A stretch of 34,343 nucleotides of DNA, taken from the sequence record BK067790.1. The stretch is one strand, 5' to 3'. The notes below the pieces were generated by a model that searched no databases, was not told the origin of the DNA, and worked only from the letters and a program-made list of their open reading frames with translations. Positions 17,019 to 34,343 of the stretch are shown piece after piece; the first letter of the stretch is position 1, and each line of letters starts with the position of its first letter. The position numbers and the translations under genes were made by a program.

Positions 17019-17054
17019 AAAGATATATTAAAGCAAAATATTCTATACTACTTG

Positions 17055-18568: not shown

Positions 18569-18579
18569 TGCTTGTTGGT

Positions 18580-18645
18580 TTAACTTAGCTGACAAGGTGG
18601 TTGGCTACCGATTAGTTAATTAGATGGGGGGAATAACCCCCCCTA
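18580..18645 (+). other. intergenic pair of stem-loops
   Basis: TTAACT...AGTTAA enclosing GGTGG-TTGG-CTACC; then G6-AATAA-C7 hairpin (18626-18643). Confidence 0.4.
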
Positions 18646-18747
18646 TTGACTGGACTTTGTAACAAGTGTTATACTTCTAACGTGGAATTGTTTGATGTTG
18701 ATGAGGGACTATACCAGTGTGAGATATGCATAATAGGCAACGAATGA
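18646..18747 (+). CDS. Zn-ribbon micro-protein (33 aa)
   Basis: TTG start; MTGLCNKCYTSNVELFDVDEGLYQCEICIIGNE*; ATGA-coupled to the nuclease. Confidence 0.6.
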   Translation: MTGLCNKCYTSNVELFDVDEGLYQCEICIIGNE

Positions 18748-19067
18748 GAATCAGTAACGGTCATGCAACAAAGTATTTACTTAAACATGGATATAATCAC
18801 ATTTGGCTTAAAGCCCACACAAAGTTTAAAGACAAAGTACAATGTCAAGATACTAGATACTATGCTCTTGACTTATGGAATTTATATGATGGCTTGTGCT
18901 TTGATACCAAAGGCATACTATGGGCTATCCAAATTAAGACAAACGCATGGGCGAAAGCCAGTGACATTATAGAGTTTCAAAAAGACCACAAGATAAAGTG
19001 TATCGTTTTGAACGTAAAGAAAGAAAAGTCAAGATGGTATGTACACGAAAGAAAGTATGCATACTAA
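18744..19067 (+). CDS. PD-(D/E)xK nuclease, Holliday-junction-resolvase (Hjc)-like
   Basis: YLLKHGY...DLWNLYDGLCF...LWAIQIKTN matches the D-x-(F/W)...D...Q-x-K catalytic layout; ATG 18744 via ATGA overlap. Confidence 0.7.
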   Translation: MRISNGHATKYLLKHGYNHIWLKAHTKFKDKVQCQDTRYYALDLWNLYDGLCFDTKGILWAIQIKTNAWAKASDIIEFQKDHKIKCIVLNVKKEKSRWYVHERKYAY

Positions 19068-19234
19068 CCATACCAAAAAACATATATTATTATATATTAT
19101 TATTATAATCCTAGAGGCTAGAACCGTATTATAAGGGACACTCAGTCGGGTCTTATCCCCTCAGTCTAAAAGTACGGCAAGGTATATTGTACCTCATTGA
19201 TTGCCTCACAAACATTTTAATATAGAAAATTATA

Positions 19235-20071
19235 ATGATAGTAATTATGAATGAACGTGATGAAAAAAGAGTAGAAAAGGTATGGGGTAGCATGGTCAGA
19301 TTGGAAACTGCAAAGTACCATGTCGATAATACCGAACCGTCATACCACATACTCTCATTTGGTGGTGGTCGTCAAACAGTGGCACTGTTGTTAAGTATGA
19401 AAAAACTTCTTAGCAATAACAAAAAAGCATGGGTTGTTTTTGCCGATACTGGGGGTGAACACCAAGAAACTTATGATTATATCAACGAGTATATCATACC
19501 GTTTTGTAATATTAATAAAATTCAGTTTGTCAGGGTTCATAACAAATATGGAAAAACCTTGTATGATTACTGCTGGGATAAAAAAATAGTTCCGTCAATA
19601 AAATTTAGGGATTGTACTTCCAAGTTCAAGATAGCACCAATTAGAAAATTCATAAGAGAAGAATTGAATGTTACAAGAAAACACCCATGCTATGTTCATA
19701 TTGGAATATCTTATGACGAGGCAACTAGAATGAACGCCTCTAATGTTTTGTATGCCAAGTCAGTATATCCGTTTGTTGACGGATATAGGGACATTGAGGG
19801 CAAAAAGACAGTTGAGGACTGTGCAAGAATTGTATCTGATGAGGGATTTCCACCAGTTCCTAAATCGGGTTGCTGGTTCTGTCCATTTGCTCAGACATTG
19901 GACTTGTTAGACCCACGTTACAAAGAAAAGACACAGGCATTGGAAGAAAATAATAGCAGATACCCAGAAATTAAACTGAGAGGTATGGGTAAAAACACCA
20001 AATCAGTCAATGAGTTGACAATAAATGACGTAGGAAAAGATTCTTGTAAGTCTGGGTACTGTATGGTATGA
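19235..20071 (+). CDS. PAPS-reductase/DndC-like PP-loop family protein
   Basis: ILSFGGGRQT (PP-loop), FADTGGEH.ETY, CTSKFKIAP, IGIS.DE..R, KSGCWFCPF; start uncertain. Confidence 0.85.
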   Translation: MIVIMNERDEKRVEKVWGSMVRLETAKYHVDNTEPSYHILSFGGGRQTVALLLSMKKLLSNNKKAWVVFADTGGEHQETYDYINEYIIPFCNINKIQFVRVHNKYGKTLYDYCWDKKIVPSIKFRDCTSKFKIAPIRKFIREELNVTRKHPCYVHIGISYDEATRMNASNVLYAKSVYPFVDGYRDIEGKKTVEDCARIVSDEGFPPVPKSGCWFCPFAQTLDLLDPRYKEKTQALEENNSRYPEIKLRGMGKNTKSVNELTINDVGKDSCKSGYCMV

Positions 20072-20163
20072 AGTGTAACTGCCTACCCTGCCAAAACGGC
20101 ACACATCAAGACAGACAATGTATCTATCGTTGCAACTGTACCCATGAGGCACATGAGAAATGA
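20068..20163 (+). CDS. Cys/His-rich micro-protein (31 aa)
   Basis: ATGA coupling at both ends; MKCNCLPCQNGTHQDRQCIYRCNCTHEAHEK*. Confidence 0.6.
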   Translation: MKCNCLPCQNGTHQDRQCIYRCNCTHEAHEK

Positions 20164-20261
20164 GTTGGTTTAACCTATCTGTAAACGCCAAGACCTGTAA
20201 AAGATGTAAGCAAAGAATTATGAATTATCCATGCATTGAATGTGGATTTAGGCATGATTAG
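20160..20261 (+). CDS. Zn-ribbon micro-protein (33 aa)
   Basis: MSWFNLSVNAKTCKRCKQRIMNYPCIECGFRHD*. Confidence 0.65.
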   Translation: MSWFNLSVNAKTCKRCKQRIMNYPCIECGFRHD

Positions 20262-20297
20262 TCACAAAAAATAGAATCTATTTTCAGATAATATCAA

Positions 20298-20324
20298 ACC
20301 CCTAGAGGGCTTCATTCTAGGGGT
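20298..20324. terminator. hairpin after the operon end
   Basis: ACCCCTAGA (20298-20306) / TCTAGGGGT (20316-20324), 9-bp perfect stem. Confidence 0.5.
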
Positions 20325-20466
20325 ACAAGGAATATTAACGCAATCTTAATACTCGAATTTAATTATTATATAACAAATTTAAACCTTGAAAGGTTTGGTT
20401 CGTGACGAATTTAATCTAATCAGCGAACTTGAATTGAATTTCAGTATATTGTATTTAAAATTAAAG

Positions 20467-20616
20467 TAAACTTACTTAGGTGTCCCATGATAATTACGGG
20501 ACACTTTTTCTCTATTAACTTTCTTAGAACTGATTTCCAACAAAGTTAATGATGAAATTGTGTCCCGTAAACTCATTATACTTTAAATAAAACACTGACT
20601 TACTTAGGTAAGTTTA
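20467..20616. repeat. nested inverted and direct repeats (origin- or operator-like)
   Basis: TAAACTTAC/GTAAGTTTA outer IR; TTACGGGACAC (20494-20504)/GTGTCCCGTAA (20560-20570); GTGTCCC at 20480; ACTTACTTAGGT direct repeat at 20470 and 20598. Confidence 0.8.
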
Positions 20617-20642
20617 TTAAATCAATAAAATATAGATAAATA

Positions 20643-20837
20643 TTGAAAGTAGTTAAGAATTATTCACTAAATGTTGAAGTGGTAAAGGCATTTGACGAAG
20701 AAGTTTCAGACCAAACAAGGTCAAGACTTATTGAAGCACTTATGATAAAATTCTTGGTTGAATATACTAGGGGTAATGAGGAAACCCCTAGTATTGACGA
20801 TTCCAGTCTTACCACAGAAAAGGAAGCGATACAATGA
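20643..20837 (+). CDS. ribbon-helix-helix regulator
   Basis: VVKNYSLNVEVVKAFDEEV...RSRLIEALMIKFL: RHH strand-helix-helix pattern; ATGA-coupled to the helicase. Confidence 0.75.
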   Translation: MKVVKNYSLNVEVVKAFDEEVSDQTRSRLIEALMIKFLVEYTRGNEETPSIDDSSLTTEKEAIQ

Positions 20838-22498
20838 CTTTAATCCCAGATGATAAAACTATTACGAATTGTGATTTTTGTCTTAAAGATGATTATGAAA
20901 ACTGTACCAAAGGGGGTCTGTGTCCAGCAAATCCTAACAAGCCACAGTTAAAGAAACTGATTTTATGTGACCATTGTAAAAATGGGGGTGACTGGAAGGC
21001 ACATGAGGAATGTGAGAAAAACTATATCGCCAATGGATTAAAGACATTTTGTCAATGCCCTAGTCTATCTCATGGAAGAAATGCCACGACTTCTATGGAA
21101 CCAGTTTCTTTTATGGACAAGATAAAGTTTGATTCTCAGACTTTGGAAACCGTAAAACATGAGCATAAGGACAGAATTGATATTATTGCAACAAGACTTA
21201 TTGACAAATATAATTTTGTAACTGCTAGAGAAACAGACACTATCTACTACTTTAATGGTAAGATATATGATTCCAAAAACTGTGAGTCAGTAATCAAACA
21301 GGAAACCGAAATACAGATTGTTGAATGTACCAAGTCAGACAAGGCTGAAGTCATTGACAAGATAAAGTCAAGAACCTATGAAAGCCTAGACCATTTTGAC
21401 AAGGACATTGAAAGCCTAGTAGTGCAAAACGGTGTATTGAGTTTACAGACAATGGAATTAAGCCCACATACCCCCCTTAATTTGGCAAAAGTTTTGTTGC
21501 CTTTGAATTACGTCAAGCCTGAGTTTGAAATTGATATAGACGATTTGTTTAATTCCTTAAAGTCAAATCTCAAAGATACTTTGTTTTGGAAATTTTTGGA
21601 AACTTCTTTTACGCATGAGTACAAAGCTGATGAGGAATCAATGCTTTCAGTTTTGGAAATGATGGCTTCGACAATTATTAGAAAACAAATTGACGAAAGA
21701 AGTTTTATTATGCTAGGCAACGGTGCTAACGGAAAGTCAGTATGTCTTGACTATCTTTCTGCCATACTTGGCAGGGACAATGTTTCTCATATTCCGTTAC
21801 AGGTTTTGGCTGAAGATAAATTTGCCAGTGCAAGACTTGACGGAAAACACGCAAATATATTTTCTGACTTGGAAAGAAATGAGCTGTACCATACTGGTAT
21901 CATCAAGGACTTGTCTTCAGGCGAACCAGTTCATGCACAACAAAAAAACAAGAACGGTTTTGACCTGTACCCTTTTGCCACTTTGGTATTTTCATGTAAC
22001 AAGTTTCCCAGAGTCTTTGACCAGTCACAGGGATTTTTCAGACGTTGGATTTTGGTAAAGTGGGAAAGAAATTTTGAGAAAGACCCACAGAAAAATGACA
22101 ACTTGAAAAAGGAACTGCTGGAAAAGACAGAAGAAATGGACTTGGTTTTCTCATGTCTTTGTCATGTTGCAAAGAAACTTTATGACTCAAACAGATTTAC
22201 AAATCCTAAAGACTGGAAGACAGTTCAGAAATTATGGAATGAAAATTCTGACCCTTTGAACTGGTTTGTCGAGAACCATATCATTGATTCAAACGGAAGC
22301 CGTTCAAAGCGTGACACATATCAGTTTTACAAAAAAATAATGTTTGAAAAGGGCGAAGTCCCTTTGGGTATGGGTAAATTTAGCAAGGCATTTTCAGAAT
22401 ACTATGAGGATTCAAAGTCAGATCACGAAAGAATTTGGCTTAACATTGAGTTTAGGGAACCACAACAAACAACGTTAGAGGAAAGTGACAAAACATGA
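20834..22498 (+). CDS. D5-like superfamily 3 replicative helicase with N-terminal Cys/His clusters
   Basis: Walker A GNGANGKS, Walker B ANIFSD, motif B IKDLSSGEPV..QQKNK..F, motif C FSCN, GFFRRW; D5_N-like region; C-terminal wHTH-like FSKAF. Confidence 0.9.
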   Translation: MTLIPDDKTITNCDFCLKDDYENCTKGGLCPANPNKPQLKKLILCDHCKNGGDWKAHEECEKNYIANGLKTFCQCPSLSHGRNATTSMEPVSFMDKIKFDSQTLETVKHEHKDRIDIIATRLIDKYNFVTARETDTIYYFNGKIYDSKNCESVIKQETEIQIVECTKSDKAEVIDKIKSRTYESLDHFDKDIESLVVQNGVLSLQTMELSPHTPLNLAKVLLPLNYVKPEFEIDIDDLFNSLKSNLKDTLFWKFLETSFTHEYKADEESMLSVLEMMASTIIRKQIDERSFIMLGNGANGKSVCLDYLSAILGRDNVSHIPLQVLAEDKFASARLDGKHANIFSDLERNELYHTGIIKDLSSGEPVHAQQKNKNGFDLYPFATLVFSCNKFPRVFDQSQGFFRRWILVKWERNFEKDPQKNDNLKKELLEKTEEMDLVFSCLCHVAKKLYDSNRFTNPKDWKTVQKLWNENSDPLNWFVENHIIDSNGSRSKRDTYQFYKKIMFEKGEVPLGMGKFSKAFSEYYEDSKSDHERIWLNIEFREPQQTTLEESDKT

Positions 22499-22611
22499 GG
22501 TGCAAGTTATGTGGCAAGGTTGTAAAGGTTGTAAACGAATATCATTGTTGGGTTGCGTCACAGCATTGTGGTGCGTGTCACTACTTTGGGGGTAAAAAAA
22601 GTGTCAGGTAG
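22495..22611 (+). CDS. Zn-binding micro-protein (38 aa)
   Basis: ATGA coupling; MRCKLCGKVVKVVNEYHCWVASQHCGACHYFGGKKSVR*. Confidence 0.65.
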   Translation: MRCKLCGKVVKVVNEYHCWVASQHCGACHYFGGKKSVR

Positions 22612-22621
22612 AAATTATGAA

Positions 22622-22774
22622 ATGTATTCGTATTGCAACGGCTGTTCAGAACGAACCATGAAAAAATATCCTAAAGATATGTTGAGGTGTCCAGACTGTA
22701 ATCAGAAACTAAGACATAAACCGAAATCAACTTCAGCAAAAAGACGGGCAAACATGAACTTACCTCGTATTTAA
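22622..22774 (+). CDS. Zn-ribbon protein with basic tail
   Basis: MYSYCNGC...RCPDCNQKLRHKPKS; ATG 22622 preferred over the track start 22553. Confidence 0.7.
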   Translation: MYSYCNGCSERTMKKYPKDMLRCPDCNQKLRHKPKSTSAKRRANMNLPRI

Positions 22775-22780
22775 ATATGG

Positions 22781-22800
22781 GTATAGTTAGGTATAGTTAG
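22781..22800 (+). repeat. 10-bp tandem repeat between TATA and start codon
   Basis: GTATAGTTAG x2, between TTTAAATA (~22771) and ATG 22804. Confidence 0.7.
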
Positions 22801-22803
22801 GGC

Positions 22804-22986
22804 ATGGCTAGACCACGAATAGATTACAATACTCAGTCAATCTGTATGGAATGTAACCAACTTTATCCAAAGGAATTAAAATTGACAATGTGTCCTAATC
22901 CAAACTGTTTCAACTCTCATTTGAGATTCCAGTCAAGAAGTAAGACGGCTAGACATAGACGAGAGGTTGCAAGGTATGAGGTTTAA
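22804..22986 (+). CDS. Zn-ribbon protein with basic tail
   Basis: CMEC...CPNPNC...LRFQSRS; similar to 22622..22774. Confidence 0.7.
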   Translation: MARPRIDYNTQSICMECNQLYPKELKLTMCPNPNCFNSHLRFQSRSKTARHRREVARYEV

Positions 22987-23092
22987 TTGGAAGAAATGCA
23001 AATTATGTGGGGAAATGTTTGATGAAGATGAAAGATATAAACACCAAAGTCAGAAACACTTTTGGTATTTGGGTGATATAACAGATGATTGA
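22976..23092 (+). CDS. C2H2 Zn-finger micro-protein (38 aa)
   Basis: GAGGT SD; MRFNWKKCKLCGEMFDEDERYKHQSQKHFWYLGDITDD*. Confidence 0.65.
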   Translation: MRFNWKKCKLCGEMFDEDERYKHQSQKHFWYLGDITDD

Positions 23093-24104
23093 AATAATAA
23101 TGCTGTTAATGCTTGGCGGTGAAATGGATCTGTCAACTGAACTGGCTGTCAATGTTAAAGAACAAACTGGCAAAGTAGATGAATTACAATTAGAGTATGA
23201 CTCATTACAAGATGGGTTGCTTAAAGTTAAAACTGATATGAATGGTATCTATGCTGATTATATCAAATGGGAAATCAAGTCCAATGTTAATGACGAAAGC
23301 AAAGCCATGAAGGACTATTACCACGATAAAGCACTTGAAGTAAAAAATGAATGGCGTGTGCTAAACAGTGAGATGAAAAAACTTGAAAAGGAATCTGATG
23401 AAGTCATGTTTGACTTGGAAACTGCCAAAGTGTTGCTTGAAAAAATGGAAAAGGATTTGGAAAATCTGTTAAAGGCTAACGAACCCATAGAATCAAGATA
23501 CAAAAATATCAGCATATCACTTTCAAAGAACTGTCAAACCATGATCAACTACGGGTTATACACCAACTGCCCTACCTATGCCGAACTGTTTGAACTGTAT
23601 GACAATACAAACCCTACCGTGTCAGGCACAATGGTTGACACAAAGTATGACATTGAACGTGTTGACACAATGAAAAAGCACTGGAAATTCTATGAACAAT
23701 ATGATAATTTTGAACTTGTAATGGTTCAGCCTGACTCAGACTTTCAGCACAAAAGTGTAAACGTAGAGATACAGGCTGGAAACTTTACGACACTTGCACT
23801 TGTCGGCAACGACAATTCCAGAAACTTTAAGAACGGAAGTTATACCACATGGGAAAACTTTAAGATAAATGATAGTTGTACCAAAATTATTGTCGCACCT
23901 GACATGGAACTGATTGACCAAGCCGTTGAGTTTGCAAAGAATAACTGTGACGGTGACATTGATATTTTAGAAAACACTGTAATCAAACAGGAACCTACAC
24001 CTCATAACGATAGGAACTGGCGTGACTCACCAGCCTTAGTTTATCAGGACTGGTTAAGGAACGCCATTGAAAATAACAAGGGATTGATGTTAGGTCGTGG
24101 TTAA
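23085..24104 (+). CDS. secreted/anchored coiled-coil protein with Cys-containing C-terminal domain
   Basis: Short hydrophobic N-terminus, heptad-rich region, globular C-terminal domain. Confidence 0.8.
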   Translation: MIEIIMLLMLGGEMDLSTELAVNVKEQTGKVDELQLEYDSLQDGLLKVKTDMNGIYADYIKWEIKSNVNDESKAMKDYYHDKALEVKNEWRVLNSEMKKLEKESDEVMFDLETAKVLLEKMEKDLENLLKANEPIESRYKNISISLSKNCQTMINYGLYTNCPTYAELFELYDNTNPTVSGTMVDTKYDIERVDTMKKHWKFYEQYDNFELVMVQPDSDFQHKSVNVEIQAGNFTTLALVGNDNSRNFKNGSYTTWENFKINDSCTKIIVAPDMELIDQAVEFAKNNCDGDIDILENTVIKQEPTPHNDRNWRDSPALVYQDWLRNAIENNKGLMLGRG

Positions 24105-24435
24105 GAAAAAGTATAACGGAAGATATGATAATCTTCCCACATGGAAAAGATTTTTACATAAAAATACTGGATTCATTGTGATGAGTGCAGTTGGAATTTT
24201 AATTCTTACGGCTTGGACAATTAACGAACAAGAGTCTGAATTTTTTCATTCATGGAACTGTGGCAAATTGTTATACTATATGATGAGTGTAGAGGATTAT
24301 GGCTATCCTACTCATAATGATTTGACCGAAGAACAGCATTTGAAACTTCACAAGTTATACGCTGACGATTGCAGTAATGACAAATTCCAAGCACCTGACA
24401 CACTTGAGGTTGATCATGGATTTCAAGAACCTTAA
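24097..24435 (+). CDS. single-TM membrane protein
   Basis: GFIVMSAVGILILTAW segment; Cys pair in the C-terminal part. Confidence 0.75.
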   Translation: MVKKKYNGRYDNLPTWKRFLHKNTGFIVMSAVGILILTAWTINEQESEFFHSWNCGKLLYYMMSVEDYGYPTHNDLTEEQHLKLHKLYADDCSNDKFQAPDTLEVDHGFQEP

Positions 24436-24460
24436 ATACAAGTAATGTTATTTTTTCTAC

Positions 24461-24610
24461 ATGGGAAGATGGGAAGATGATATTAAACCAGCACAGGATT
24501 TAGTTCAGATTAAACGTAACAAATTAAAAAAACTACTGGTCTTATACGGTATCGCTGGTGCTTGTACAGGTATAGCATTTGGAATGTATTTTTCAGGGGG
24601 TATATGCTAA
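24461..24610 (+). CDS. small single-TM protein (49 aa)
   Basis: CTTAAATA about 23 nt upstream; MGRWEDD...KLLVLYGIAGACTGIAFGMYFSGGIC*; TAATG coupling. Confidence 0.65.
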   Translation: MGRWEDDIKPAQDLVQIKRNKLKKLLVLYGIAGACTGIAFGMYFSGGIC

Positions 24611-24729
24611 TGCCTATCGGTGGCTATGGGTACGGTGTAACAAGTGATTACACAGTAAAGTCTGGGAAACGTTGCCCTGCTTGTGGCAAAACAAAATGTA
24701 AACATGGAAAAAAAGCTAGAGTTTTCTAA
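24610..24729 (+). CDS. Zn-binding basic micro-protein (39 aa)
   Basis: MPIGGYGYGVTSDYTVKSGKRCPACGKTKCKHGKKARVF*; TAATG-coupled on both sides. Confidence 0.65.
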   Translation: MPIGGYGYGVTSDYTVKSGKRCPACGKTKCKHGKKARVF

Positions 24730-25307
24730 TGCAAGATAAAGTAAATTATATTTCCCCCGAAACTTTTGAGAGAATTGTTGAGTATGTTCCGATACTTGGT
24801 ATTCGCAAGTGGAAAGATGAGGACATTAAAATGCTCTATAAGACAATGTATTACTGTGCATTACGGGCTAACGAGGCGATTCATTTAAAGAAAGAAAGTT
24901 TCAACTTGGAAGATCGTGAAATTTATCTAGGCAAAACCAAAACAAAGAAACAAGATACTGCACATATTCCTCATATTTTTGTAGATGAACTAAAGACTTG
25001 GCTTATCTTCAAGGAAAAAGGCAGACTGTTTGAAGGGCTGACATATCCAAGACTGTATGTATGGTGCAAAAGAATAGGGTCTGACTTGGATATTTCAGCA
25101 TGGCAAAGTCTTGAAGCCGAAGTTGGTGAAAAGGTTGTGACTCACTTGTTTAGAAAGTCAATCGGCAAGGAAATGTTAAACGGAACTCATGGTGAAAAAG
25201 CCAGTTCGATTCCTGTAATATCAAAACACCTCAGACATTCAAAACCTTCCATGACAGTTGACCATTATCTAAAAGCCAGTCTTGAATCAGTCAAAGAGGC
25301 GTGGTAG
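24729..25307 (+). CDS. tyrosine recombinase (catalytic domain only, 192 aa)
   Basis: YYCALRANEA (R), KTKTK (K), HLFRKS (HxxR), LRHS (H), TVDHY (Y). Confidence 0.92.
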   Translation: MQDKVNYISPETFERIVEYVPILGIRKWKDEDIKMLYKTMYYCALRANEAIHLKKESFNLEDREIYLGKTKTKKQDTAHIPHIFVDELKTWLIFKEKGRLFEGLTYPRLYVWCKRIGSDLDISAWQSLEAEVGEKVVTHLFRKSIGKEMLNGTHGEKASSIPVISKHLRHSKPSMTVDHYLKASLESVKEAW

Positions 25308-25326
25308 TATTTTTATACTACAATGT
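25299..25326. other. candidate recombinase target site (11-6-11, dif/att-like)
   Basis: GCGTGGTAGTA-TTTTTA-TACTACAATGT, imperfect inverted arms with a perfect GTAGTA/TACTAC core; overlaps the recombinase stop codon. Confidence 0.35.
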
Positions 25327-25340
25327 TTTGTACATAATTA

Positions 25341-25430
25341 ATGCCGTTTAAAAAAGGAAACAAACCTCACAACAAAGGGCACGTTAAAGTTGGGTCACAT
25401 TTTAAAGCAAAACCAAAACGTAAGAAATGA
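25341..25430 (+). CDS. basic micro-protein (29 aa)
   Basis: TTTTATAC about 23 nt upstream; MPFKKGNKPHNKGHVKVGSHFKAKPKRKK*; F.KG..P.NKG is NUMOD-like. Confidence 0.55.
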   Translation: MPFKKGNKPHNKGHVKVGSHFKAKPKRKK

Positions 25431-25513
25431 CGAGTGTAAAAGGTTCTTGCAGAACAAAATATAGTCGAAGTATTCCAAAGACTTACAAAAAAAAGTCAAA
25501 GAAAAAGAAATAG
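25427..25513 (+). CDS. basic micro-protein (28 aa)
   Basis: ATGA coupling; MTSVKGSCRTKYSRSIPKTYKKKSKKKK*; stop abuts the stop of the convergent gene. Confidence 0.5.
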   Translation: MTSVKGSCRTKYSRSIPKTYKKKSKKKK

Positions 25514-25798
25514 TTATTTTTTAAACTGACTCATAAAAGCGTCAATCAATATTACACAGCCGTTTACGGATTCACTTTCGTGTATTAGAAATGACTTGTT
25601 TTCTACAAACTTCAAATCAAATTCTATGTCCTTAGTAACCATAACTATGTCGTCCCTTGTTACAAGCCAGTCTTCCAAGTCATAGTCAGACACGCCCTGT
25701 GGTGTAAAGACCAGTTTGTAACCCAACTTTTGTAATTTTCGTACAAGCTTGGCATTTCTCATATTTTCATCAAGAAATATCTTTTTCATACCAGCCAT
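25514..25798 (-). CDS. PIN-like (Mut7-C/DUF5615-type) domain protein
   Basis: IFLDEN...L.KLGY...GVSD.DL...IVMVTKDIEF pattern; start likely MAGMKKIF (25798) or 25789. Confidence 0.7.
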   Translation of the reverse strand: MAGMKKIFLDENMRNAKLVRKLQKLGYKLVFTPQGVSDYDLEDWLVTRDDIVMVTKDIEFDLKFVENKSFLIHESESVNGCVILIDAFMSQFKK

Positions 25799-26084
25799 AT
25801 CCCCTAAGTCCGTCACGTTTTTCGTACAAACTTTCAATCCATTCCTTGTCAGTCAGGATTTCATCACCTGTCATTTCATAATGTGTCAGAATTATGGAAG
25901 AACAGTCTAGGCATTTACCTACTAGATTTCCATAACCCCCGTCAAATCCTGAAGCATTACTTTTTGAATGGAAACTTACCATTCTATGATTACAGTCTTT
26001 AGGGTCTTGCAACTCACCAAGTATCGCATTGATTATTGTCTTTGCTTCAGACTCGGAAGCCTTACGGATTTGTGGTTCACTCAT
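25770..26084 (-). CDS. hypothetical protein with C/H...CxxC
   Basis: GAGGAC SD before ATG 26084 (MSEPQ). Confidence 0.7.
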   Translation of the reverse strand: MSEPQIRKASESEAKTIINAILGELQDPKDCNHRMVSFHSKSNASGFDGGYGNLVGKCLDCSSIILTHYEMTGDEILTDKEWIESLYEKRDGLRGYGWYEKDIS

Positions 26085-26235
26085 TGTGTACGTCCTCAAC
26101 AAAACAACCAGCACATAGATACACGTTACCATCAACAAAAGATATTTCTTTGTTTTTTGGCAACTTTGTAACTATGTATCTGTGACCTATCCCTATCGGA
26201 TTTTCACAGTTGTCGCAGTATAGTGAGGACTTCAT
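26077..26235 (-). CDS. Zn-ribbon micro-protein (52 aa)
   Basis: MKSSLYCDNCENPIGIG...YLCAGCFVEDVHNE*; overlaps both neighbours. Not in the ORF track. Confidence 0.7.
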   Translation of the reverse strand: MKSSLYCDNCENPIGIGHRYIVTKLPKNKEISFVDGNVYLCAGCFVEDVHNE

Positions 26236-26432
26236 GGGGTGTCAGTCCATTCAGCGTATTTTTCTACATAGTCAGGGTCTTTTACATTCCACTTTGAAAC
26301 ATATTGTTCGTTGGTGGAATTATCAATGTAGTAAATCCATTCACCCATTCTAATGTATGCTACTTCGTCATTACGAATGTCAAGATTTATTGACTGTTTG
26401 TTTACCTTGACTTCCATTTTTATTGGCTTCAT
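26232..26432 (-). CDS. hypothetical protein
   Basis: ATGA-coupled in the leftward array. Confidence 0.7.
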   Translation of the reverse strand: MKPIKMEVKVNKQSINLDIRNDEVAYIRMGEWIYYIDNSTNEQYVSKWNVKDPDYVEKYAEWTDTP

Positions 26433-26743
26433 TGGTGTTCAATTCCTTTTGCTTCGTCTTTGTCTGAATACATTCTAGTGAATATGACTTCAAGTTTTGT
26501 AGGACTTCCGTCTTTGTCAAAGCTGACATAAACGGGATATTCCCCGTCACCCCAGTTGGTGAACGTTGCAACACCTGAAAACTTTTCACTAGGCAAGTTG
26601 TCAATGTTTGCACAAAAGTCACCCCACTTTGATTCGTCATACAGTTCAGGGTGGTGCTTGATGTAACAAGGGTCACCAACCCATACCAGTCCAGCGTCAA
26701 CTGAAACTGAACCTACACAGTATCTGCCTTTTTTGACAGTCAT
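26429..26743 (-). CDS. DUF4241-like viral protein
   Basis: VGSVSVDAGLVWVGDPCY...TNWGDGEYPVY motif pair. Confidence 0.65.
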   Translation of the reverse strand: MTVKKGRYCVGSVSVDAGLVWVGDPCYIKHHPELYDESKWGDFCANIDNLPSEKFSGVATFTNWGDGEYPVYVSFDKDGSPTKLEVIFTRMYSDKDEAKGIEHQ

Positions 26744-26895
26744 TGTTTCAAGCCCTCAACTTTCAAACATTCTTCACAAAGTATCTCACCTTTTTTGTTT
26801 TCAAAATACACGAAAGAAAGTACATTACATACTTTACAAACATAGTTTTTTGCAAACATTTGTAGGCTATTTTCTTTTTTTATAAAGTCGTTCAT
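26740..26895 (-). CDS. Zn-ribbon micro-protein (51 aa)
   Basis: MNDFIKK...VCKVC...ILCEECLKVEGLKQ*; ATGA coupling at both ends. Confidence 0.7.
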   Translation of the reverse strand: MNDFIKKENSLQMFAKNYVCKVCNVLSFVYFENKKGEILCEECLKVEGLKQ

Positions 26896-27113
26896 AAGTC
26901 CTCAATCCTTAGACCGTCTTTCAATATCAAGTCGGGGTGAGGTCTTTCTATCCCATATTTTTCAACTTGTTCTTTCATTCGCCATAAAACCCCACTAAAT
27001 ATTTCATTAAACATTTGATAGCCGTTAGCTTGATTTTCAGCTACGTTGTCTAATCGGGCTTTAGCTTCTTGTAAGGTTTCCATATAGTCACGAATGTCGT
27101 ATATGTCTGTCAT
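26892..27113 (-). CDS. hypothetical protein
   Basis: ATGA-coupled; junction motif upstream. Confidence 0.7.
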   Translation of the reverse strand: MTDIYDIRDYMETLQEAKARLDNVAENQANGYQMFNEIFSGVLWRMKEQVEKYGIERPHPDLILKDGLRIEDL

Positions 27114-27316
27114 TGTTTCAAGCCCTCATCTTTTACTGCCTTTATTGCAGTATTGAATCTTTCAGACCCCATACTTTCTTCTAACATTTTACCGATTTCA
27201 TCAGCTTCATTGAATATTTCATCAAGTGAAACTGATTCACCTCTAGCCTGTCTTTCATCTATCTTTCTTTTGGACATTATTTTGTCCCCTTTTTCCATGA
27301 TTTCATCATAGGTCAT
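27110..27316 (-). CDS. hypothetical protein
   Basis: ATGA-coupled; ends EGLKQ. Confidence 0.7.
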   Translation of the reverse strand: MTYDEIMEKGDKIMSKRKIDERQARGESVSLDEIFNEADEIGKMLEESMGSERFNTAIKAVKDEGLKQ

Positions 27317-27645
27317 TGTCTAGCCTCAACTTTTTTCATATATGCAAGTATCTCTTCCAACTCATTTATTGAAAAATGTGTTGTGCTTACAATATGTTTT
27401 GGTTTTGCTTTAGACGTTAATTTTGTTGGTAGTTTTCCGTATGACTTGATTTGGAAGTTAAAGCTTGTACTTCCATTCATACCAGATTGACTACAATAGA
27501 TTCTAATCATTGAACCGTCTTGATTAGCGTATTCTAGCCAATTATCTACTGCGTCTTTATCTACTTCGATTGCTTTACAAAATGGTTTGTCTATTAATAA
27601 ATCACCCATTCTTGTATCGGCACTTTTTACGATATGAGTTTTCAT
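27313..27645 (-). CDS. hypothetical protein
   Basis: ATGA-coupled. Confidence 0.7.
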   Translation of the reverse strand: MKTHIVKSADTRMGDLLIDKPFCKAIEVDKDAVDNWLEYANQDGSMIRIYCSQSGMNGSTSFNFQIKSYGKLPTKLTSKAKPKHIVSTTHFSINELEEILAYMKKVEARQ

Positions 27646-27839
27646 TGTGTTCTGTCCTCACAATTCTCATGCCAAACTAACTGCATTGAAATTTTTTCCA
27701 ACACTTCTTTTGGTATGTCTTTGTCTTTGATAGGTTCCTTACAATAGCAACATGAATAACCTAGTCCATATTGTTCTGACATTTTTGCTTCGTTACTTTC
27801 ATCAGATTGAACGAATTGATTTTGGTTTTTGTTTTCCAT
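27642..27839 (-). CDS. Zn-binding protein, first gene of a leftward operon
   Basis: CCYC...WHENC; TTTAATA about 23 nt upstream. Confidence 0.7.
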   Translation of the reverse strand: MENKNQNQFVQSDESNEAKMSEQYGLGYSCCYCKEPIKDKDIPKEVLEKISMQLVWHENCEDRTQ

Positions 27840-27902
27840 GATTAGTAATTATTGTACTAGGTATTAAATGTATAGTTTTCTATGGGAAATAGCATAAATA
27901 CT

Positions 27903-27962
27903 TTAGGGTTGATTTGGTTCTTTTGGCTTACATTTTGTACAAACATGATAGCGTTTTGTCAT
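27903..27962 (-). CDS. possible 19-aa peptide
   Basis: MTKRYHVCTKCKPKEPNQP*; starts 3 nt after the upstream stop. Confidence 0.3.
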   Translation of the reverse strand: MTKRYHVCTKCKPKEPNQP

Positions 27963-27965
27963 GTG

Positions 27966-28106
27966 TTAATATCGTGCAGAACGGATATAAGATTTTCCTG
28001 AAACACCAGCCATGCCGTAATGGCACAATGCACATTCATTATTTGAAGTCCAACAATGTCTAGGCTTACGACATTTCTGGGTCTTTTTACAAGTCTTACA
28101 CCTCAT
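27966..28106 (-). CDS. Zn-binding micro-protein (46 aa), paralog of 22495..22611
   Basis: MRCKTCKKTQKCRKPRHCWTSNNECALCHYGMAG...; ATGA coupling. Confidence 0.7.
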   Translation of the reverse strand: MRCKTCKKTQKCRKPRHCWTSNNECALCHYGMAGVSGKSYIRSARY

Positions 28107-28309
28107 AATTCTAAACGCCTACGCCTTGCAATAGTATTCTTTGCACGTTTAGATAATTTTACACCACAGCAAGGACACCAAATCCCTTCATACTTTATGA
28201 ACAAACAACATTTTGCACATTTTTTATATGGTGTATTTGCCAAATTTCTCACGACTTTTTTATGTTCGTATTCAGGTTTTAGACAAACATTCTTGCAAAC
28301 TAAAGTCAT
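28103..28309 (-). CDS. Thaumarchaeota-type CPCCG Zn-ribbon protein
   Basis: CKNVC...KKCAKCCLFIKYEGIWCPCCGVKL resembles the small conserved Nitrososphaeria family with KRC..C..FI.WDG..CPCCG..LR (recalled, unverified). Confidence 0.75.
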   Translation of the reverse strand: MTLVCKNVCLKPEYEHKKVVRNLANTPYKKCAKCCLFIKYEGIWCPCCGVKLSKRAKNTIARRRRLEL

Positions 28310-28698
28310 TTCCTACGCTTCCTTTTTTTCTTAGGTGCTGGTTGTGAGCTGAAAGCTTGAATTAATGCAAGTGTTCCTACTGCTATTTCGCCCATTACAT
28401 GACCAGTTTTTTTAAGGATTTGAATCTTACGTTCTTTAGACTTTCTTTTTCTTTCGATTTCGATTTCTTCTTTTGTTTGAAAGTCTGTTAAAATTACGTT
28501 GTATTTTTTGCACATAACTTCTTGAATGTTTCTTATTTCCCATGTGAAATTATGATTCGTGCTGTCAAAATGGTCACAAATTTTATCTTTGTCACCTGTT
28601 TCAAAGTCACATTCTAAACAGACACCAAGAACTATATCAGTATTAAAATTAGACCATTCTTTCATAGTGTATTTGCGAATATATCTCATATTTTGCAC
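28306..28698 (-). CDS. hypothetical protein with CxxC/H motif and basic tail
   Basis: CLECDF...CDHF; ends KKKRKRRK; the true start may be ATG 28689. Confidence 0.7.
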   Translation of the reverse strand: MQNMRYIRKYTMKEWSNFNTDIVLGVCLECDFETGDKDKICDHFDSTNHNFTWEIRNIQEVMCKKYNVILTDFQTKEEIEIERKRKSKERKIQILKKTGHVMGEIAVGTLALIQAFSSQPAPKKKRKRRK

Positions 28699-28868
28699 CC
28701 ATTTTTCTTACTATGGTTTACCAATTCAATGTATAATTCATCTTGAATTTTTCTAATATGTTCTGTTAGTTCAGGACTTAACATATTTTCCAATTCCATT
28801 AAATCGTTTAAATGACCCCTTGCCAATTTTATACGATTAGTTACTGCATACTTGCCAATTTTTTTCAT
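28686..28868 (-). CDS. hypothetical protein
   Basis: ATGA-coupled. Confidence 0.65.
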   Translation of the reverse strand: MKKIGKYAVTNRIKLARGHLNDLMELENMLSPELTEHIRKIQDELYIELVNHSKKNGCKI

Positions 28869-29449
28869 CTTAAAGTTTCCCTAAACATTTTGAATACAGT
28901 TTCATCTAATGGCTTAGATGTTTGGGTTAGTTCATCAAATATTTGATTATGTATTTGGTCATATTTTTGATTATACCTGTAAAGTCTTGTCCTCATTATA
29001 TCTTCATAAAACTCATGTACTCTATCACCCATATATTCACCATCATCATCTTTGACAATATCAAGTTCTATGTAATTTTTATGTCGTGGATCATGATAGT
29101 CAATTAAATGAACTTCTTTTGTGTCACCGAACTGGTCTCTTGCAACATCAAATATTGTACAGTTTCCAGTCCTAACCCACATATGCTGTCTTCCAGTCCC
29201 ATGTCCTGTAAGATGAATACCCTTAACTAAGCTCCAGCTTTCTTGCCAGCCACCTAATTTATTGTATAGTGATTCGTTACTTATTCCACAATGCCTCACA
29301 AATTTTCTTCCGTTGGACTTGAAGATTTGTGTTTTTTTATCATAAGTTCTATTTTTTATATTTTCAGAACTTAAAAATAATGAACCATGCATTATTTCAT
29401 CATAGTCTAAATAATATTCCTCATCTTGATAGACAATGCATTGAATCAT
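28865..29449 (-). CDS. hypothetical protein (194 aa)
   Basis: ATGA-coupled, junction motif. Confidence 0.75.
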   Translation of the reverse strand: MIQCIVYQDEEYYLDYDEIMHGSLFLSSENIKNRTYDKKTQIFKSNGRKFVRHCGISNESLYNKLGGWQESWSLVKGIHLTGHGTGRQHMWVRTGNCTIFDVARDQFGDTKEVHLIDYHDPRHKNYIELDIVKDDDGEYMGDRVHEFYEDIMRTRLYRYNQKYDQIHNQIFDELTQTSKPLDETVFKMFRETLR

Positions 29450-29643
29450 CTTAAAGTCCTCACGGTTTCGTCCTTGTATTCTAAGGTCTTTTCAACCCAG
29501 CCCAATATCAAGTCCATTGAATCAAGGTGTTTCTTCATGGCTTCTTTAGCTTCAAAATCTGTTTCTATATCGTACAGTTGAGACCATGAATCAAACAAGT
29601 CAAGGTTTAATTTGTACAAATTTTCCAAGTCTTTGTCGTTCAT
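29446..29643 (-). CDS. hypothetical protein
   Basis: ATGA-coupled, junction motif. Confidence 0.7.
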   Translation of the reverse strand: MNDKDLENLYKLNLDLFDSWSQLYDIETDFEAKEAMKKHLDSMDLILGWVEKTLEYKDETVRTLR

Positions 29644-29750
29644 TTTTCCAAGTCCTCATGGCTTTTTTCATGGGTGTTTTTGTTTGTGGTTCGGGTAAAC
29701 TGTTTACCACAATACCAACATTTAGGACTGTCCGAATTATATAATGTCAT
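29640..29750 (-). CDS. C2H2 Zn-finger micro-protein (36 aa)
   Basis: MTLYNSDSPKCWYCGKQFTRTTNKNTHEKSHEDLEK*; junction motifs at both ends. Not in the ORF track. Confidence 0.75.
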   Translation of the reverse strand: MTLYNSDSPKCWYCGKQFTRTTNKNTHEKSHEDLEK

Positions 29751-29938
29751 TGGTTCAAGTCCTCACCAATCGCCTTTTTATGACATTGCCAACATTCCCA
29801 ATCAGAATATAAACCTACTTTATTTCCACAATCGCACCATAAATTATATTCTGGACAATCATCATTTGTCCATTCATCAATCTCTTTTTTTGTATATGGA
29901 ATTTTTGCATATTCTATCTGTTCTTTTTCAGTAATCAT
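29747..29938 (-). CDS. Cys-rich small protein
   Basis: C..Y.LWCDC...ECWQCH; ends EDLNQ. Confidence 0.7.
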   Translation of the reverse strand: MITEKEQIEYAKIPYTKKEIDEWTNDDCPEYNLWCDCGNKVGLYSDWECWQCHKKAIGEDLNQ

Positions 29939-30309
29939 TTTTCCAAGTCCTCATTTTGTGCAATTTCTTTTTCAGTAAATCCAAGTTGCAAAAGAACATC
30001 TTTTAATTGCTCTTTTTCTTCTTCAAATATTTCATCAAAGTATTCATCATTACTATCGGATTCAATACCCCATAAACCACCTGAACTAATTGTTTGACTT
30101 ATGCCATTTATTCGGATTTCAGCTACAGCTTGAATCCCTACAAAATGCCATTCATTGTTATAATATGCTTCAAGTCTTTTTTTATCTTGTTTGGCATTTT
30201 GACGTTCATCAGGGTTTTTTGAGTTTATATCACATTGTTGTAAATATGATATATCCCCAACATCATCATCAGTTTGTTGACAACTTATTGATTCGATTTT
30301 TTTAGTCAT
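29935..30309 (-). CDS. acidic viral hypothetical protein
   Basis: W.FVGI.A...SGGLWGIESD motif seen in phage/plasmid hypotheticals; ends EDLEK. Confidence 0.75.
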   Translation of the reverse strand: MTKKIESISCQQTDDDVGDISYLQQCDINSKNPDERQNAKQDKKRLEAYYNNEWHFVGIQAVAEIRINGISQTISSGGLWGIESDSNDEYFDEIFEEEKEQLKDVLLQLGFTEKEIAQNEDLEK

Positions 30310-30599
30310 TGGTTCAAGTCCCCCATTAACCTAGATTTCATCTTTTTTGTGGCGATAGGTTTTGCCAATTTGTAGAAAACTAAAACATTATGACAGATAT
30401 CTTTTTTCTGTTTGTCTGTCAAGTGTTCGGTTTTCTGAACTGAAGAAATCTGACTTTCACAGCCTCTCAAAAAGTTGTCGATTTCTTCAAAGTCCAAACT
30501 GTTAAAGAGTTTTTTATACTCTTTTACAGTTGGCAGTTTGTCAATATTTCCTACTTCATACTGGCTTATCTGATTTAACAGATAAATGATTAAGGGCAT
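30306..30599 (-). CDS. hypothetical protein
   Basis: Coupled; ends GDLNQ. Confidence 0.7.
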   Translation of the reverse strand: MPLIIYLLNQISQYEVGNIDKLPTVKEYKKLFNSLDFEEIDNFLRGCESQISSVQKTEHLTDKQKKDICHNVLVFYKLAKPIATKKMKSRLMGDLNQ

Positions 30600-30877
30600 T
30601 AGTTCAAGCCCTCACTTTTTGCACAAAAATTGTCTTCTTGCATGGTCTTTAGACCATTGTCCTCTTTTTCCATTCTGATAAAGTTTAACTTCATCAAAAG
30701 TCCTGATAAAGTTATTTTTCTATCAGCCATGAATCGCCCTTTATCATCTATATCAGGGGTTTCTTTAATCCATGTATCAACTATTTTTATCAGTTCGTTT
30801 AACTGACTTAGTGATAGATGAGAAGCATTATTTTTAATAATGCCTCTCAAAGTCTGGACGTTTTTTGTATAACTCAT
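30599..30877 (-). CDS. hypothetical protein
   Basis: Start MSYTKN (30877) follows a GGGGGA SD-like run; ends EGLN. Confidence 0.7.
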   Translation of the reverse strand: MSYTKNVQTLRGIIKNNASHLSLSQLNELIKIVDTWIKETPDIDDKGRFMADRKITLSGLLMKLNFIRMEKEDNGLKTMQEDNFCAKSEGLN

Positions 30878-30878
30878 T

Positions 30879-31478
30879 TTATACAGTCCCCCTGATGAAA
30901 TGTTCTTCATCATCAAACAGTTTTTTCCCTAAACCATAGGTAAAATTATGGTAAGGATTAGCGTCCAATACACCATATTTGAAATCTAAGCATTTCAAGG
31001 CTATGTTGTAAGGCTTACCGTCAATTATTACAAAAAACGTGTAATAATTTTTGTTTTTGTTTTCGTGTGGAACTTCATAAAGTATAGTCCCTTTTGGCAG
31101 TTTCATTAAAACTGCTAAAGTTTCCAGTTCATTCCAAAATAAACCAGCTTCTTTCATTCTTTTCTCGTTTATGTCTGTGATTTCATTCCCTTGTTTTGAC
31201 AATGAACCCCATTCATAATGTGAGCAGATTAAATTATGCTCATCTTCACAGGCACTTTTTAAGATACTCAAAATATGATGGTGTCTTAAATTGTCCCCAT
31301 TAGCCAAGTCTGTTATCTTCTTAATTTTCAAGGCTTTTTTACAGGCTTTAATTCTGTCAGAAAATACAGTTGGTGCGATACCCTCATATTTTTTAGATAA
31401 TTCAGTATGCATTTTTGTTTTTTCTTTTGAATTATGTTCTAACCACACAGAATTTGAATTTGTTTCTATATGATTCAT
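30879..31478 (-). CDS. hypothetical protein (199 aa)
   Basis: ATGA-coupled, junction motif upstream. Confidence 0.75.
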   Translation of the reverse strand: MNHIETNSNSVWLEHNSKEKTKMHTELSKKYEGIAPTVFSDRIKACKKALKIKKITDLANGDNLRHHHILSILKSACEDEHNLICSHYEWGSLSKQGNEITDINEKRMKEAGLFWNELETLAVLMKLPKGTILYEVPHENKNKNYYTFFVIIDGKPYNIALKCLDFKYGVLDANPYHNFTYGLGKKLFDDEEHFIRGTV

Positions 31479-31816
31479 TTTAACAAGTCCCTCACTAAAC
31501 CAATTAATTTTTCTCTTTGTGCTTCGGTTATTGGTTCATCATTGTTCATTTTGTAAACTTTTGTTTTTTTGTCAAAACTAAACAATTTTTCCTTACTAGG
31601 ACATTGTTTGTTTAATACTGCCTTCCATACTGGACACGAAGCCCAATTATATCCTATTTTTGTAGGGTATAATTCCATCATTCTTTTTTGTATGTTGGGT
31701 TTAGAATCTTCAAAGTTTTCAGATTCACAAATTGCTCGTAAAAAGTGAGCTTGAAATTCTTCTTTCATTGTTGGTTTAACTGCTATTATGCAGTTTTCAA
31801 TTTCTTGGAGATTCAA
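31475..31816 (-). CDS. hypothetical protein
   Basis: TTG start overlapping the upstream TGA. Confidence 0.7.
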   Translation of the reverse strand: MNLQEIENCIIAVKPTMKEEFQAHFLRAICESENFEDSKPNIQKRMMELYPTKIGYNWASCPVWKAVLNKQCPSKEKLFSFDKKTKVYKMNNDEPITEAQREKLIGLVRDLLK

Positions 31817-32052
31817 TTTTCAATTCCCCATTCTTGTAGATTCTCTATTTCATCAAGCCATTCCTGTAAAATTTGGCATGGGTTTCTTCGTGCGTACATG
31901 ATGTTATCATGTCTAATATCTGAATTATCCCTAATTAACCAGTCAAGGTTTAACTCTAAAGATATACCTTGTTCGGCTTGTTCTATGTATTCTATCTGCT
32001 CTTTGAAATCATCTTTTAATTCCTTCAATGCTTGTTTTTGTTCAGGATTCAA
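31813..32052 (-). CDS. hypothetical protein
   Basis: TTG start immediately after the upstream TAA; GAGGGG SD. Confidence 0.7.
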   Translation of the reverse strand: MNPEQKQALKELKDDFKEQIEYIEQAEQGISLELNLDWLIRDNSDIRHDNIMYARRNPCQILQEWLDEIENLQEWGIEN

Positions 32053-32211
32053 TTAGAAACCCCTCACAAAATTGGTACTAATTCTTTCTATTTCTTTTGC
32101 TATTTTTGAGGCTGTGAAAAAATCGCCTGTAACAATAGCTATTCTAGCCTTATCGGCTAACCGTGTCAATGTTTCGGTATCTTGAAACATTTGTGTTTGT
32201 TGTGTTTTCAT
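32053..32211 (-). CDS. first gene of the main leftward operon (52 aa)
   Basis: MKTQQTQMFQDTETLTRLADKARIAIVTGDFFTASKIAKEIERISTNFVRGF*; TTAATTAA about 22 nt upstream. Not in the ORF track. Confidence 0.7.
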   Translation of the reverse strand: MKTQQTQMFQDTETLTRLADKARIAIVTGDFFTASKIAKEIERISTNFVRGF

Positions 32212-32260
32212 GATTAGTATAGAAACGTATAGTTAATTAACTTTTCAGTCGTTACTTATA

Positions 32261-32820
32261 CCCCCCCTATTTCCAGTCCAGTCATAAAATTAGACTTTGT
32301 ATTTTCTAAAAATATCATGGTATTTTTTCGGAAGTACATCAATTTAATCAAATTACCATATCATTTTTTGATAAAGTCCATGTCAATATTATTTTAGTAA
32401 TTGGTTTAGATTTCTTAACTTCTAAATTATGTTTTACAGATAACCAAACTTTGAACCCCAAATAGTCACAAATCAATAAAATCAATCAATTTCATTTCTA
32501 TTGTCTAATATTGATAATAGCATGGGCTTCTCTATATATGGGCGTGGGTGTGCCTGATACATATTAGCCATAAGGTGCGATTTTCAAAATCCTGTATAGA
32601 TTAGTTATTTTTGAAAATAAAAAAAATTTAATCAACTTTCTTTAATCATTCTGTCAAGTATTATTATTTTGACTGGAAATATAGGTGCTATATAAAAAGC
32701 CTAGTGCACAGTCTGGACTGGAAATATAGGTGGCATGATTTCAATATTTCATAACTGGAGTGGAAACAAGGGGGGTTTATATTATGACTAAGCCCACGAC
32801 TGGAGTGGAAATGGGGGTTT
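32261..32820. promoter_or_regulatory. candidate replication origin: ORB-like repeats with G-strings flanking an AT-rich tract
   Basis: Four (C/G)TGGAAA-core repeats on + (cores at 32674, 32719, 32761, 32806; spacing 45/42/45) and one inverted copy at 32261-32283; AT-rich 32290-32670 between them. Confidence 0.6.
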
Positions 32821-32922
32821 TTTTGGACTCACCAATTCTTATCGGGTCTAAGCCATGCAACGGACTTTTATGTACAAAATCTTATAACAGTCCATTTATG
32901 TACAAAGTTAGGGTGATATGCT

Positions 32923-33516
32923 ATGCCACAGTCCAGACTTCCAGACATTAATTCTGCGTTCATTAGGTATAGAAGCGAAGCCATTCACGCTTTACAGACT
33001 AAGAACTGGTCTGCCATGCATGGTGCATTAAACGGTATTAACTCATTGTTGCCAGTTGATTATCAGGTTATAATATCAAGCCAAGACTATGAGCAACTGG
33101 CAAAGACTGAGATAACTTATGCTTGTGGCAGTTGTAGTGAATCCATAGACAAGTCTAATGTTCAGGTTTTTGAGCTAATGCCTGACAGTATGCAATCGTT
33201 ACTACATGGTCGAACGTTTAATAAAGTATGGAATTGTATAAAATGTCACAGTACGAATATGTTGAACACTACTGCCATTTCACAGACAATGCTTCAGAAC
33301 CCTACATACTTGGGAATTGTACCTGACCCACCTGAAAGAAAAAATGGACTTATGGATAGAATGAAGTTTAACATAGAGATTGAAAGATGGGGTTGGCTTT
33401 TACTAAACGAAGAAGAATATAAGATGGCAAAGTTTAGAGATGATAACTGGAACAAGGGTGATGAAGAAATGGGTGATATTGACAATTCATTAGATGATAA
33501 AGAGGGCGATACATAA
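32923..33516 (+). CDS. Zn-finger-containing hypothetical protein (197 aa)
   Basis: YACGSC...WNCIKC; TAATG-coupled to the ATPase; TTTATGTACAAA repeated upstream (32867, 32895). Confidence 0.8.
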   Translation: MPQSRLPDINSAFIRYRSEAIHALQTKNWSAMHGALNGINSLLPVDYQVIISSQDYEQLAKTEITYACGSCSESIDKSNVQVFELMPDSMQSLLHGRTFNKVWNCIKCHSTNMLNTTAISQTMLQNPTYLGIVPDPPERKNGLMDRMKFNIEIERWGWLLLNEEEYKMAKFRDDNWNKGDEEMGDIDNSLDDKEGDT

Positions 33517-34343
33517 TGCCAATAACCACAACCACAAAAAAGATAGTTGCTAAAGGTGAGAATAAAGCACCATTAACTACTCATTGGAAGGGGGTATCTA
33601 TGGTTAGAAATCATTCGTTTTTGGCAACTGTCAGGGAAATTATTAACTTCAGTGCAGAAATTGACGTATGCAGAATTGGTCTTATTGGTTCAATGCACTC
33701 AGGAAAATCTACGTTAAGTCAGTCCATAGCCCATGCCATACACAAACACGCAGACTTGCAATACAAGATTAAGGTTTTGTATAAAGAAGACTTGTTAAAC
33801 TTTGAAAAGACATTACTGGCATTGGAACCAGTCAACTATATTTTGATATTTGATGATGTATCGTTTATGGGTGCTAGTGCAAACAAGAAACAAATTGAGA
33901 TGGTAAAGTCAGCCGTAACCACAATCAGACATCTGGACGGGGGACGGGACGTTAAGGTTATCGTAATGATGAACTATCACTATTCTATGGGACTTGACAA
34001 ATATCTCAGGTCGGCTGATTTCAAGTATATCACAACGGTAGATTCTTCAGAAAATGAAAATTTGATTAATATGTTTGGTAAAAAATACCAGCAAAAGATT
34101 CTGGACTTTAAAAAGTACAGACACATGGCTATTACCAAAAAGTATTGGCTTATGAAAATATCAAAAGACGGTGGACTATTCAAATATGAATACAGAAACC
34201 CGTTCATTCCTGTGATGTTTTGGAACGAAAACTCGTTACGTTTTATTGTGTCACCTACTAGACAGTGGCAAGACCCGATTTGTTCAAAATGTTCTGAAGC
34301 TACAACTTCAGGCGAATTAGAGTCAGACGTTCCTATTGAACAG
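33516..34343 (+). CDS. P-loop ATPase, probably A32/FtsK-HerA-type genome-packaging ATPase (continues at 1..240; ~355 aa)
   Basis: IGLIGSMHSGKST (Walker A), YILIFDD (Walker B), TIRH...VIVMMNYH...LDKYLR; CxxC near the end. Absent from the ORF track because it has no stop inside the window. Confidence 0.85.
   Translation, partial: MPITTTTKKIVAKGENKAPLTTHWKGVSMVRNHSFLATVREIINFSAEIDVCRIGLIGSMHSGKSTLSQSIAHAIHKHADLQYKIKVLYKEDLLNFEKTLLALEPVNYILIFDDVSFMGASANKKQIEMVKSAVTTIRHLDGGRDVKVIVMMNYHYSMGLDKYLRSADFKYITTVDSSENENLINMFGKKYQQKILDFKKYRHMAITKKYWLMKISKDGGLFKYEYRNPFIPVMFWNENSLRFIVSPTRQWQDPICSKCSEATTSGELESDVPIEQ

Follow-up and report, generated by a model that had tools for sequence, protein, structure and literature searches.

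Ends of the NMM1 assembly meet within an intact ATPase gene

The DNA analysed here (the window) is a 34,343-nt stretch; it matches GenBank BK067790.1, titled 'TPA_asm: Nitrosopumilaceae spindle-shaped virus isolate NMM1', is 100% identical to it across the 25 kb compared, and shares its length and starting base. The ends of the window are adjacent, a P-loop ATPase gene runs intact across the join, and the gene set is complete. We consider it very probable that the window is the complete, non-redundant genome of NMM1, a member of the Nipumfusiviridae, taken from an assembly that closes on itself. The assembler would have cut the ring at an arbitrary point within the core 355-aa ATPase gene, and trimming of a 127-nt overlap would then have left the gene in two pieces, one open at its 3' end (33516-34343) and the other at its 5' end (1-240). 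The features on which this reading depends are as follows.

1..34343, + strand: whole non-redundant NMM1 genome (34,470-nt IMG/VR record minus the 127-nt overlap)
33516..34343, + strand: 5' part of the ATPase gene, codons 1-276 (GenBank partial ORF56)
1..240, + strand: 3' part of the ATPase gene, codons 277-355 and TAG (GenBank partial ORF1)
32923..33516, + strand: ORF55, 197 aa, upstream neighbour of the ATPase, with the same neighbour in related contigs
1..127, no strand: end-overlap stretch, recurring at 34344-34470 of the source record and classed as a direct terminal repeat by IMG/VR

The open reading frame (ORF) at the right end begins with an ATG at 33516 and runs on the + strand through 828 nt (276 codons), up to base 34343, without a stop. 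At the left end, frame 1 of the same strand reads through 79 codons before it meets a TAG at 238-240. Because 828 is divisible by three, both pieces share one reading phase. Scripted fusion of 33516-34343 with 1-240 produced a 355-aa P-loop ATPase with zero internal stops, in which the residues ...ESDVPIEQ of the right end are followed directly by FCQETEEKWGKG... of the left end. An earlier examination of this DNA, referred to below as the original prediction, had reported the ATG at 33516, the stop-free 828-nt ORF, the 79-codon left-end frame and the join residues, all of them exactly. Its description of tight coupling in the genes that follow applies only upstream, where the stop codon of ORF55 shares one base with the ATG of the ATPase gene; downstream there is a 101-nt gap before a + strand gene starting at 342, and the two genes after that one (692-799 and 799-1272) are on the minus strand.

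The IMG/VR record from which the window derives is 34,470 nt long, and its bases 34344-34470 are an exact copy of window positions 1-127. Therefore, the sequence past base 34343 runs into base 1. IMG/VR places the record in its class 'direct terminal repeats', with a CheckV completeness of 100%, and the window corresponds to bases 1-34343 of it, that is, to the record with the 127-nt end overlap trimmed. A length of 127 nt is also the largest default k-mer of metaSPAdes, the usual assembler for Joint Genome Institute metagenomes, and for this reason the 'repeat' looks like an assembler overlap from closing a graph path, rather than a biological terminal repeat.

Alignment of full-length homologs across the join had been named in the original prediction as a check, and such homologs do align through it. 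A homolog word search, using as query the 318-aa frame read from the source record across the join, returned 159 relatives, of which 120 were listed; nearly all of those listed are 346-376 aa long. One of them, P0003 (355 aa), matches the right-end piece with residues 1-276 (96% identity) and the left-end piece with residues 277-355 (90% identity), with neither gap nor overlap between the two. Thus, because a single protein covers both pieces contiguously, the open frames at the two ends are not a product of chance. Similarly, residues 279-357 of P0006 (357 aa) cover the left-end piece.

Gene order and DNA alignments support the same arrangement. Four further contigs (L004-L007) carry an intact ATPase gene with the same neighbours on both sides: upstream is a gene of 166 or 197 aa, as at the right end of the window, and the downstream order is that of the left end, namely genes for a 157-aa (minus strand), a 344-aa and a 139-aa protein, an HNH nuclease, 88-aa and 89-aa proteins, and a giant ORF. 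The DNA of a 35.6-kb relative (G003) follows window 32832-34343 collinearly and passes from there straight into 1-524, at 86% and 91% identity, respectively. The junction stretch itself is present in 20 runs from 12 studies. In three of these (X1, with a 12,325-nt contig, X9 and X10), Logan contigs cross the join with 0 differences, and no loose contig end was seen at the join among the Logan contigs. Run X10, which bridges the join, carries no flag as a potential source of the window DNA. No reads of NMM1 were found in the raw-read run X21. Three relatives (G002, G003 and G004) also self-close, with overlaps of 123, 67 and 100 nt; placed on the window, their breaks fall at approximately 19-20 kb, 0.7 kb and 20.5 kb. 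Because relatives close at other positions, the break point of the ring is arbitrary. Thus, the 127-nt overlap, the homologs, the shared gene order, G003 and the Logan contigs all agree with the original claim that the window closes into a complete genome.

Published status and annotation of NMM1

The completeness and identity of the window are already public, through publication, IMG/VR and CheckV; the finding is correct but known and, apart from annotation curation, adds nothing new. In 2024, Ni et al. reported NMM1 among 10 complete IMG/VR genomes of 27-38 kb that are related to NYMAG-47 (PMC10866085), and BK067790.1 is the exemplar of Marefusivirus montereyense, Nipumfusiviridae, ratified in 2025 by ICTV, the international committee for virus taxonomy (PMC12451623).

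Membership of the family is also seen in the sequences. The window is identical to the exemplar, and its proteins share 47-98% identity with the proteins of one part (unit B) of a longer IMG/VR record, G001, described below. Homologs of the ATPase occur in 11/11 BK0677xx records, with 33-96% identity, and the 89-aa major capsid ORF at 4093-4362 likewise matches 11/11 records, with 49-100% identity. Only in BK067790.1, among these 11 records, is the ATPase cut by the record ends. GenBank labels this record as linear and annotates the ATPase as two partial coding sequences, ORF1 (<1..240) and ORF56 (33516..>34343). The family-defining ATPase of the ICTV exemplar is thus intact, and not truncated as the public annotation implies, which matters for core-gene trees or family profiles built from GenBank proteins.

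Topology of the genome

We consider it likely that the NMM1 molecule is a covalently closed circular double-stranded DNA (dsDNA) replicon of the fusellovirus type. A physical circle is favoured because no terminal inverted repeats were found in the window, no protein-primed PolB (pPolB) was found by six-frame scan in NMM1 and four related records, and the 20 scanned ORFs yielded no match to a terminase large subunit, portal or head-tail capsid or structural protein, and because a tyrosine recombinase was found in 5/5 related records. With slightly less confidence, we would extend this to the family and regard the Nipumfusiviridae as probable covalently closed circular replicons carrying a recombinase. 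The completeness of the ring is what gives meaning to the lack of genes for a protein-primed polymerase, a terminase and head-tail capsid proteins, and the original prediction was right to call gene absences informative.

A different molecule could yield the same assembly. If NMM1 were a linear dsDNA genome, circularly permuted and terminally redundant, made from concatemers in a headful-type process, no closed circle would be packaged, and yet assemblies of such genomes likewise close with a k-mer overlap. The core fold of the ATPase, which resembles that of FtsK/HerA-type DNA pumps including the packaging NTPase B204 of Sulfolobus turreted icosahedral virus (STIV), would also suit this arrangement. 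Nevertheless, we regard it as unlikely, given the lack of terminase, portal and head-tail matches among the scanned ORFs and the conservation of the recombinase. Moreover, known spindle-shaped virus families have genomes that are either circular (Fuselloviridae) or linear with inverted terminal repeats and pPolB (PMC8491892), and none is known to be permuted. Because assemblies cannot separate the circular from the permuted form, the wording of the original prediction, 'circular or circularly permuted', sets the claim at the right level.

The remaining alternatives dispute the adjacency or the completeness rather than the form of the molecule, and both strike us as highly improbable. The IMG/VR class would be taken at face value if the genome were linear with a true 127-nt direct terminal repeat at fixed, T7-like ends; however, the supposed ends lie inside a conserved and otherwise intact ORF, the repeat has exactly the length of the largest default metaSPAdes k, the overlaps of close relatives differ in length and fall at very different map positions, and contigs from other runs read through the site. 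Alternatively, the closure could be an assembly error, with a false ring formed via an internal repeat, or with the window covering just part of a longer genome or provirus, so that the gene set would be incomplete. Assemblers can indeed chain two related elements via a shared stretch, as the 61.6-kb G001 record shows, but the window has no other long repeat able to mislead an assembler, the join restores a conserved ORF to exact homolog length, and the gene order across the join recurs in the four other contigs. In size, the genome also falls in the 27-38 kb range of the ten relatives already published (PMC10866085), and neither host genes nor tRNA genes were found in the window. Rfam families, sought along with tRNA genes as clues to attachment sites, gave no matches either. 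A search for an integrated copy with host flanks found none, the matches being only four short contigs of metagenome-assembled genomes (MAGs), whose host-gene content was unexamined. The bins are named Chitinivibrionales, Nitrosopumilaceae, Flavobacteriales and Saccharibacteria; because the contigs are short and the bin names mixed, these matches suggest mis-binned viral contigs.

If the Nipumfusiviridae are indeed closed circles, fusellovirus-like genome biology would extend to mesophilic marine ammonia-oxidizing archaea, in contrast to the linear, protein-primed genomes of the sole isolated viruses of these hosts. A closed-circle topology is stated neither in the describing paper (PMC10866085), the main text of which makes no mention of circularity, terminal repeats or a recombinase or integrase, nor in the GenBank record.

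Sequence and structure of the ATPase

The reconstituted protein has a P-loop core of the ASCE class. Both of its Walker motifs are conserved across 42 ATPase homologs, in which residues G58, G63, K64 and D114 are invariant.

33687-33713, + strand: Walker A, GSMHSGKST, residues 58-66
33840-33857, + strand: Walker B, ILIFDD, residues 109-114

Sequence-based searches failed to name the protein. PHROGs returned no ATPase family match, Pfam made no assignment (just a sub-threshold DUF815), and the ATPase profile matched only P-loop segments among PDB sequences (best E 0.0099). A tblastn search against phage records matched the Nipumfusiviridae only, and not Nitrosopumilus spindle-shaped viruses 1-3 (NSV1-3). 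Structure was assessed on an AlphaFold model of full-length P0003, which is 94% identical to the NMM1 ATPase (mean predicted local distance difference test score 81.7). The matches to this model are listed as score; extent.

HerA: 12.2; 181
STIV2 B204 packaging NTPase: 11.9; 162 of 200
TcpA, EssC, VirB4 and FtsK: 10.3-11.5; about 180-207
AAA+ proteins (p97, NSF, Vps4): about 10-10.8; 134-148

AAA+ proteins score nearly as high as the FtsK/HerA-type ATPases. Among viral proteins, an uncharacterized one from a Nitrosopumilus spindle-shaped virus matches best (E 1.3e-9, TM 0.53/0.61). Identity to STIV/STIV2 B204 and the FtsK/HerA superfamily is only 12-15%, and the NMM1 protein differs from that superfamily in having an additional N-terminal hairpin and a C-terminal four-helix domain. 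The latter is formed by the 79 residues encoded at the left end of the window, which the model predicts confidently as four helices with a basic tail; this domain had no structural match. The protein is most likely a DNA-translocating or packaging ATPase, which, with its FtsK/HerA-like fold, would most likely move DNA in packaging or assembly of the spindle particle. It may instead have a role in replication, as suggested in the describing paper (PMC10866085).

Gene content of NMM1

The other principal features of the window are listed below.

3069-3710: HNH nuclease
3757..4023, + strand: 88-aa protein with the same two-helix layout as the 89-aa capsid protein, from sequence features
4093..4362, + strand: 89-aa major capsid protein, two hydrophobic helices and an N-x-S/T-rich turn, in 11/11 Nipumfusiviridae records
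4364-11269: 2,301-aa giant protein with fn3, LamG and discoidin domains
12309-17018: 1,569-aa orphan
19247-20071: PAPS-reductase-like protein
20834..22498, + strand: D5-like primase-helicase, D5_N and DUF5906
24729..25307, + strand: minimal tyrosine recombinase, 192 aa, catalytic domain only
32261..32820, no strand: intergenic region with repeated GGACTGGAAAT...GGGGG-type boxes resembling archaeal origin recognition boxes (ORB), about 0.7 kb upstream of the ATPase

Judged by its layout, the 88-aa protein is a likely second capsid protein. The ORB-like intergenic region is a candidate replication origin, and NMM1 would replicate by means of its own D5-like primase-helicase, probably from this region, with the tyrosine recombinase serving in integration or dimer resolution.

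Several smaller features were also observed. One Logan contig of run X9 diverges from the reference at position 10 of L003 (window ~32853), in the ORB-like intergenic region, which points to strain variation well away from the genome join. A short palindrome, GTAGTAT-TTTT-ATACTAC (window 25303-25325), overlaps with the tyrosine recombinase stop codon; it may be a hairpin that acts as a terminator or a site for the recombinase. Within the 2,301-aa ORF, window 8958-9630 comprises three tandem 291-nt (97-aa) units of 70-81% identity, corresponding to fn3-type domains. The minus-strand block contains approximately 25 small genes, and at six gene junctions in it (window 26741-30620) a motif of ~24 nt (CATTGTTTCAAGCCCTCA...) takes in the ribosome-binding site and start codon of one gene together with the end of the following gene.

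Comparison with other spindle-shaped viruses

The other Marefusivirus genomes (BK067782, BK067784, BK067785 and BK067789) share gene order with NMM1 and are 84-88% identical to it in DNA over approximately half of the query. Each has the ATPase in one intact piece, 87-95% identical to that of NMM1, and their IMG/VR source records also self-close, with the rings opened elsewhere. They differ in size (27.2-35.6 kb), and variation is also seen in the giant adhesin-like ORF and in the small-gene block.

The Fuselloviridae (SSV1-type, of Sulfolobales) have circular dsDNA genomes, a tyrosine recombinase or integrase and a conserved P-loop ATPase, and their capsid protein is small and hydrophobic with two helices, as in NMM1. 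No sequence similarity was found between NMM1 and this family, and membership is not claimed; fuselloviruses differ further in their hyperthermophile hosts, their 15-24 kb genomes and the longer integrases of SSV. Thaspiviridae, represented by NSV1, have the same putative host family and particle type as NMM1. The 27-29 kb genome of NSV1 is linear, has inverted terminal repeats of 176 bp and encodes a protein-primed PolB (PMC8491892), whereas neither the repeats nor the polymerase were found in NMM1, which self-closes.

Observations on related records

The longer record mentioned above, G001 (IMGVR_UViG_3300024517_000020, loci L013-L016; 61,587 nt), is classed by IMG/VR as linear and 100% complete. 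Its unit B (25264-59220) is 33,957 nt long, exactly the length of BK067785.1, and the first 2,367 nt of this unit recur at 59221-61587 with 99.2% identity. A second element of ~26.7 kb is only distantly related; it encodes an ATPase homolog (32% identity, 4347-4937) and a tyrosine recombinase (16923-17339) of its own. The end of the contig also resembles its start (95%). We considered and rejected the idea that G001 is a concatemer of NMM1: the D5-recombinase region is single-copy, and two different elements are chained. G001 is either a figure-eight assembly formed via a conserved stretch of the giant ORF or a cointegrate that arose naturally.

Two further records, BK067783.1 and BK067791.1, are both 30,340 bp long and from the rhizosphere, and their ATPase and capsid genes score identically. 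The ATPase-capsid spacing is 6,080 nt (modulo genome length) in both, on opposite strands and at different positions. They look like one ring deposited in two rotations; of the two, ICTV lists BK067791 only (PMC12451623).
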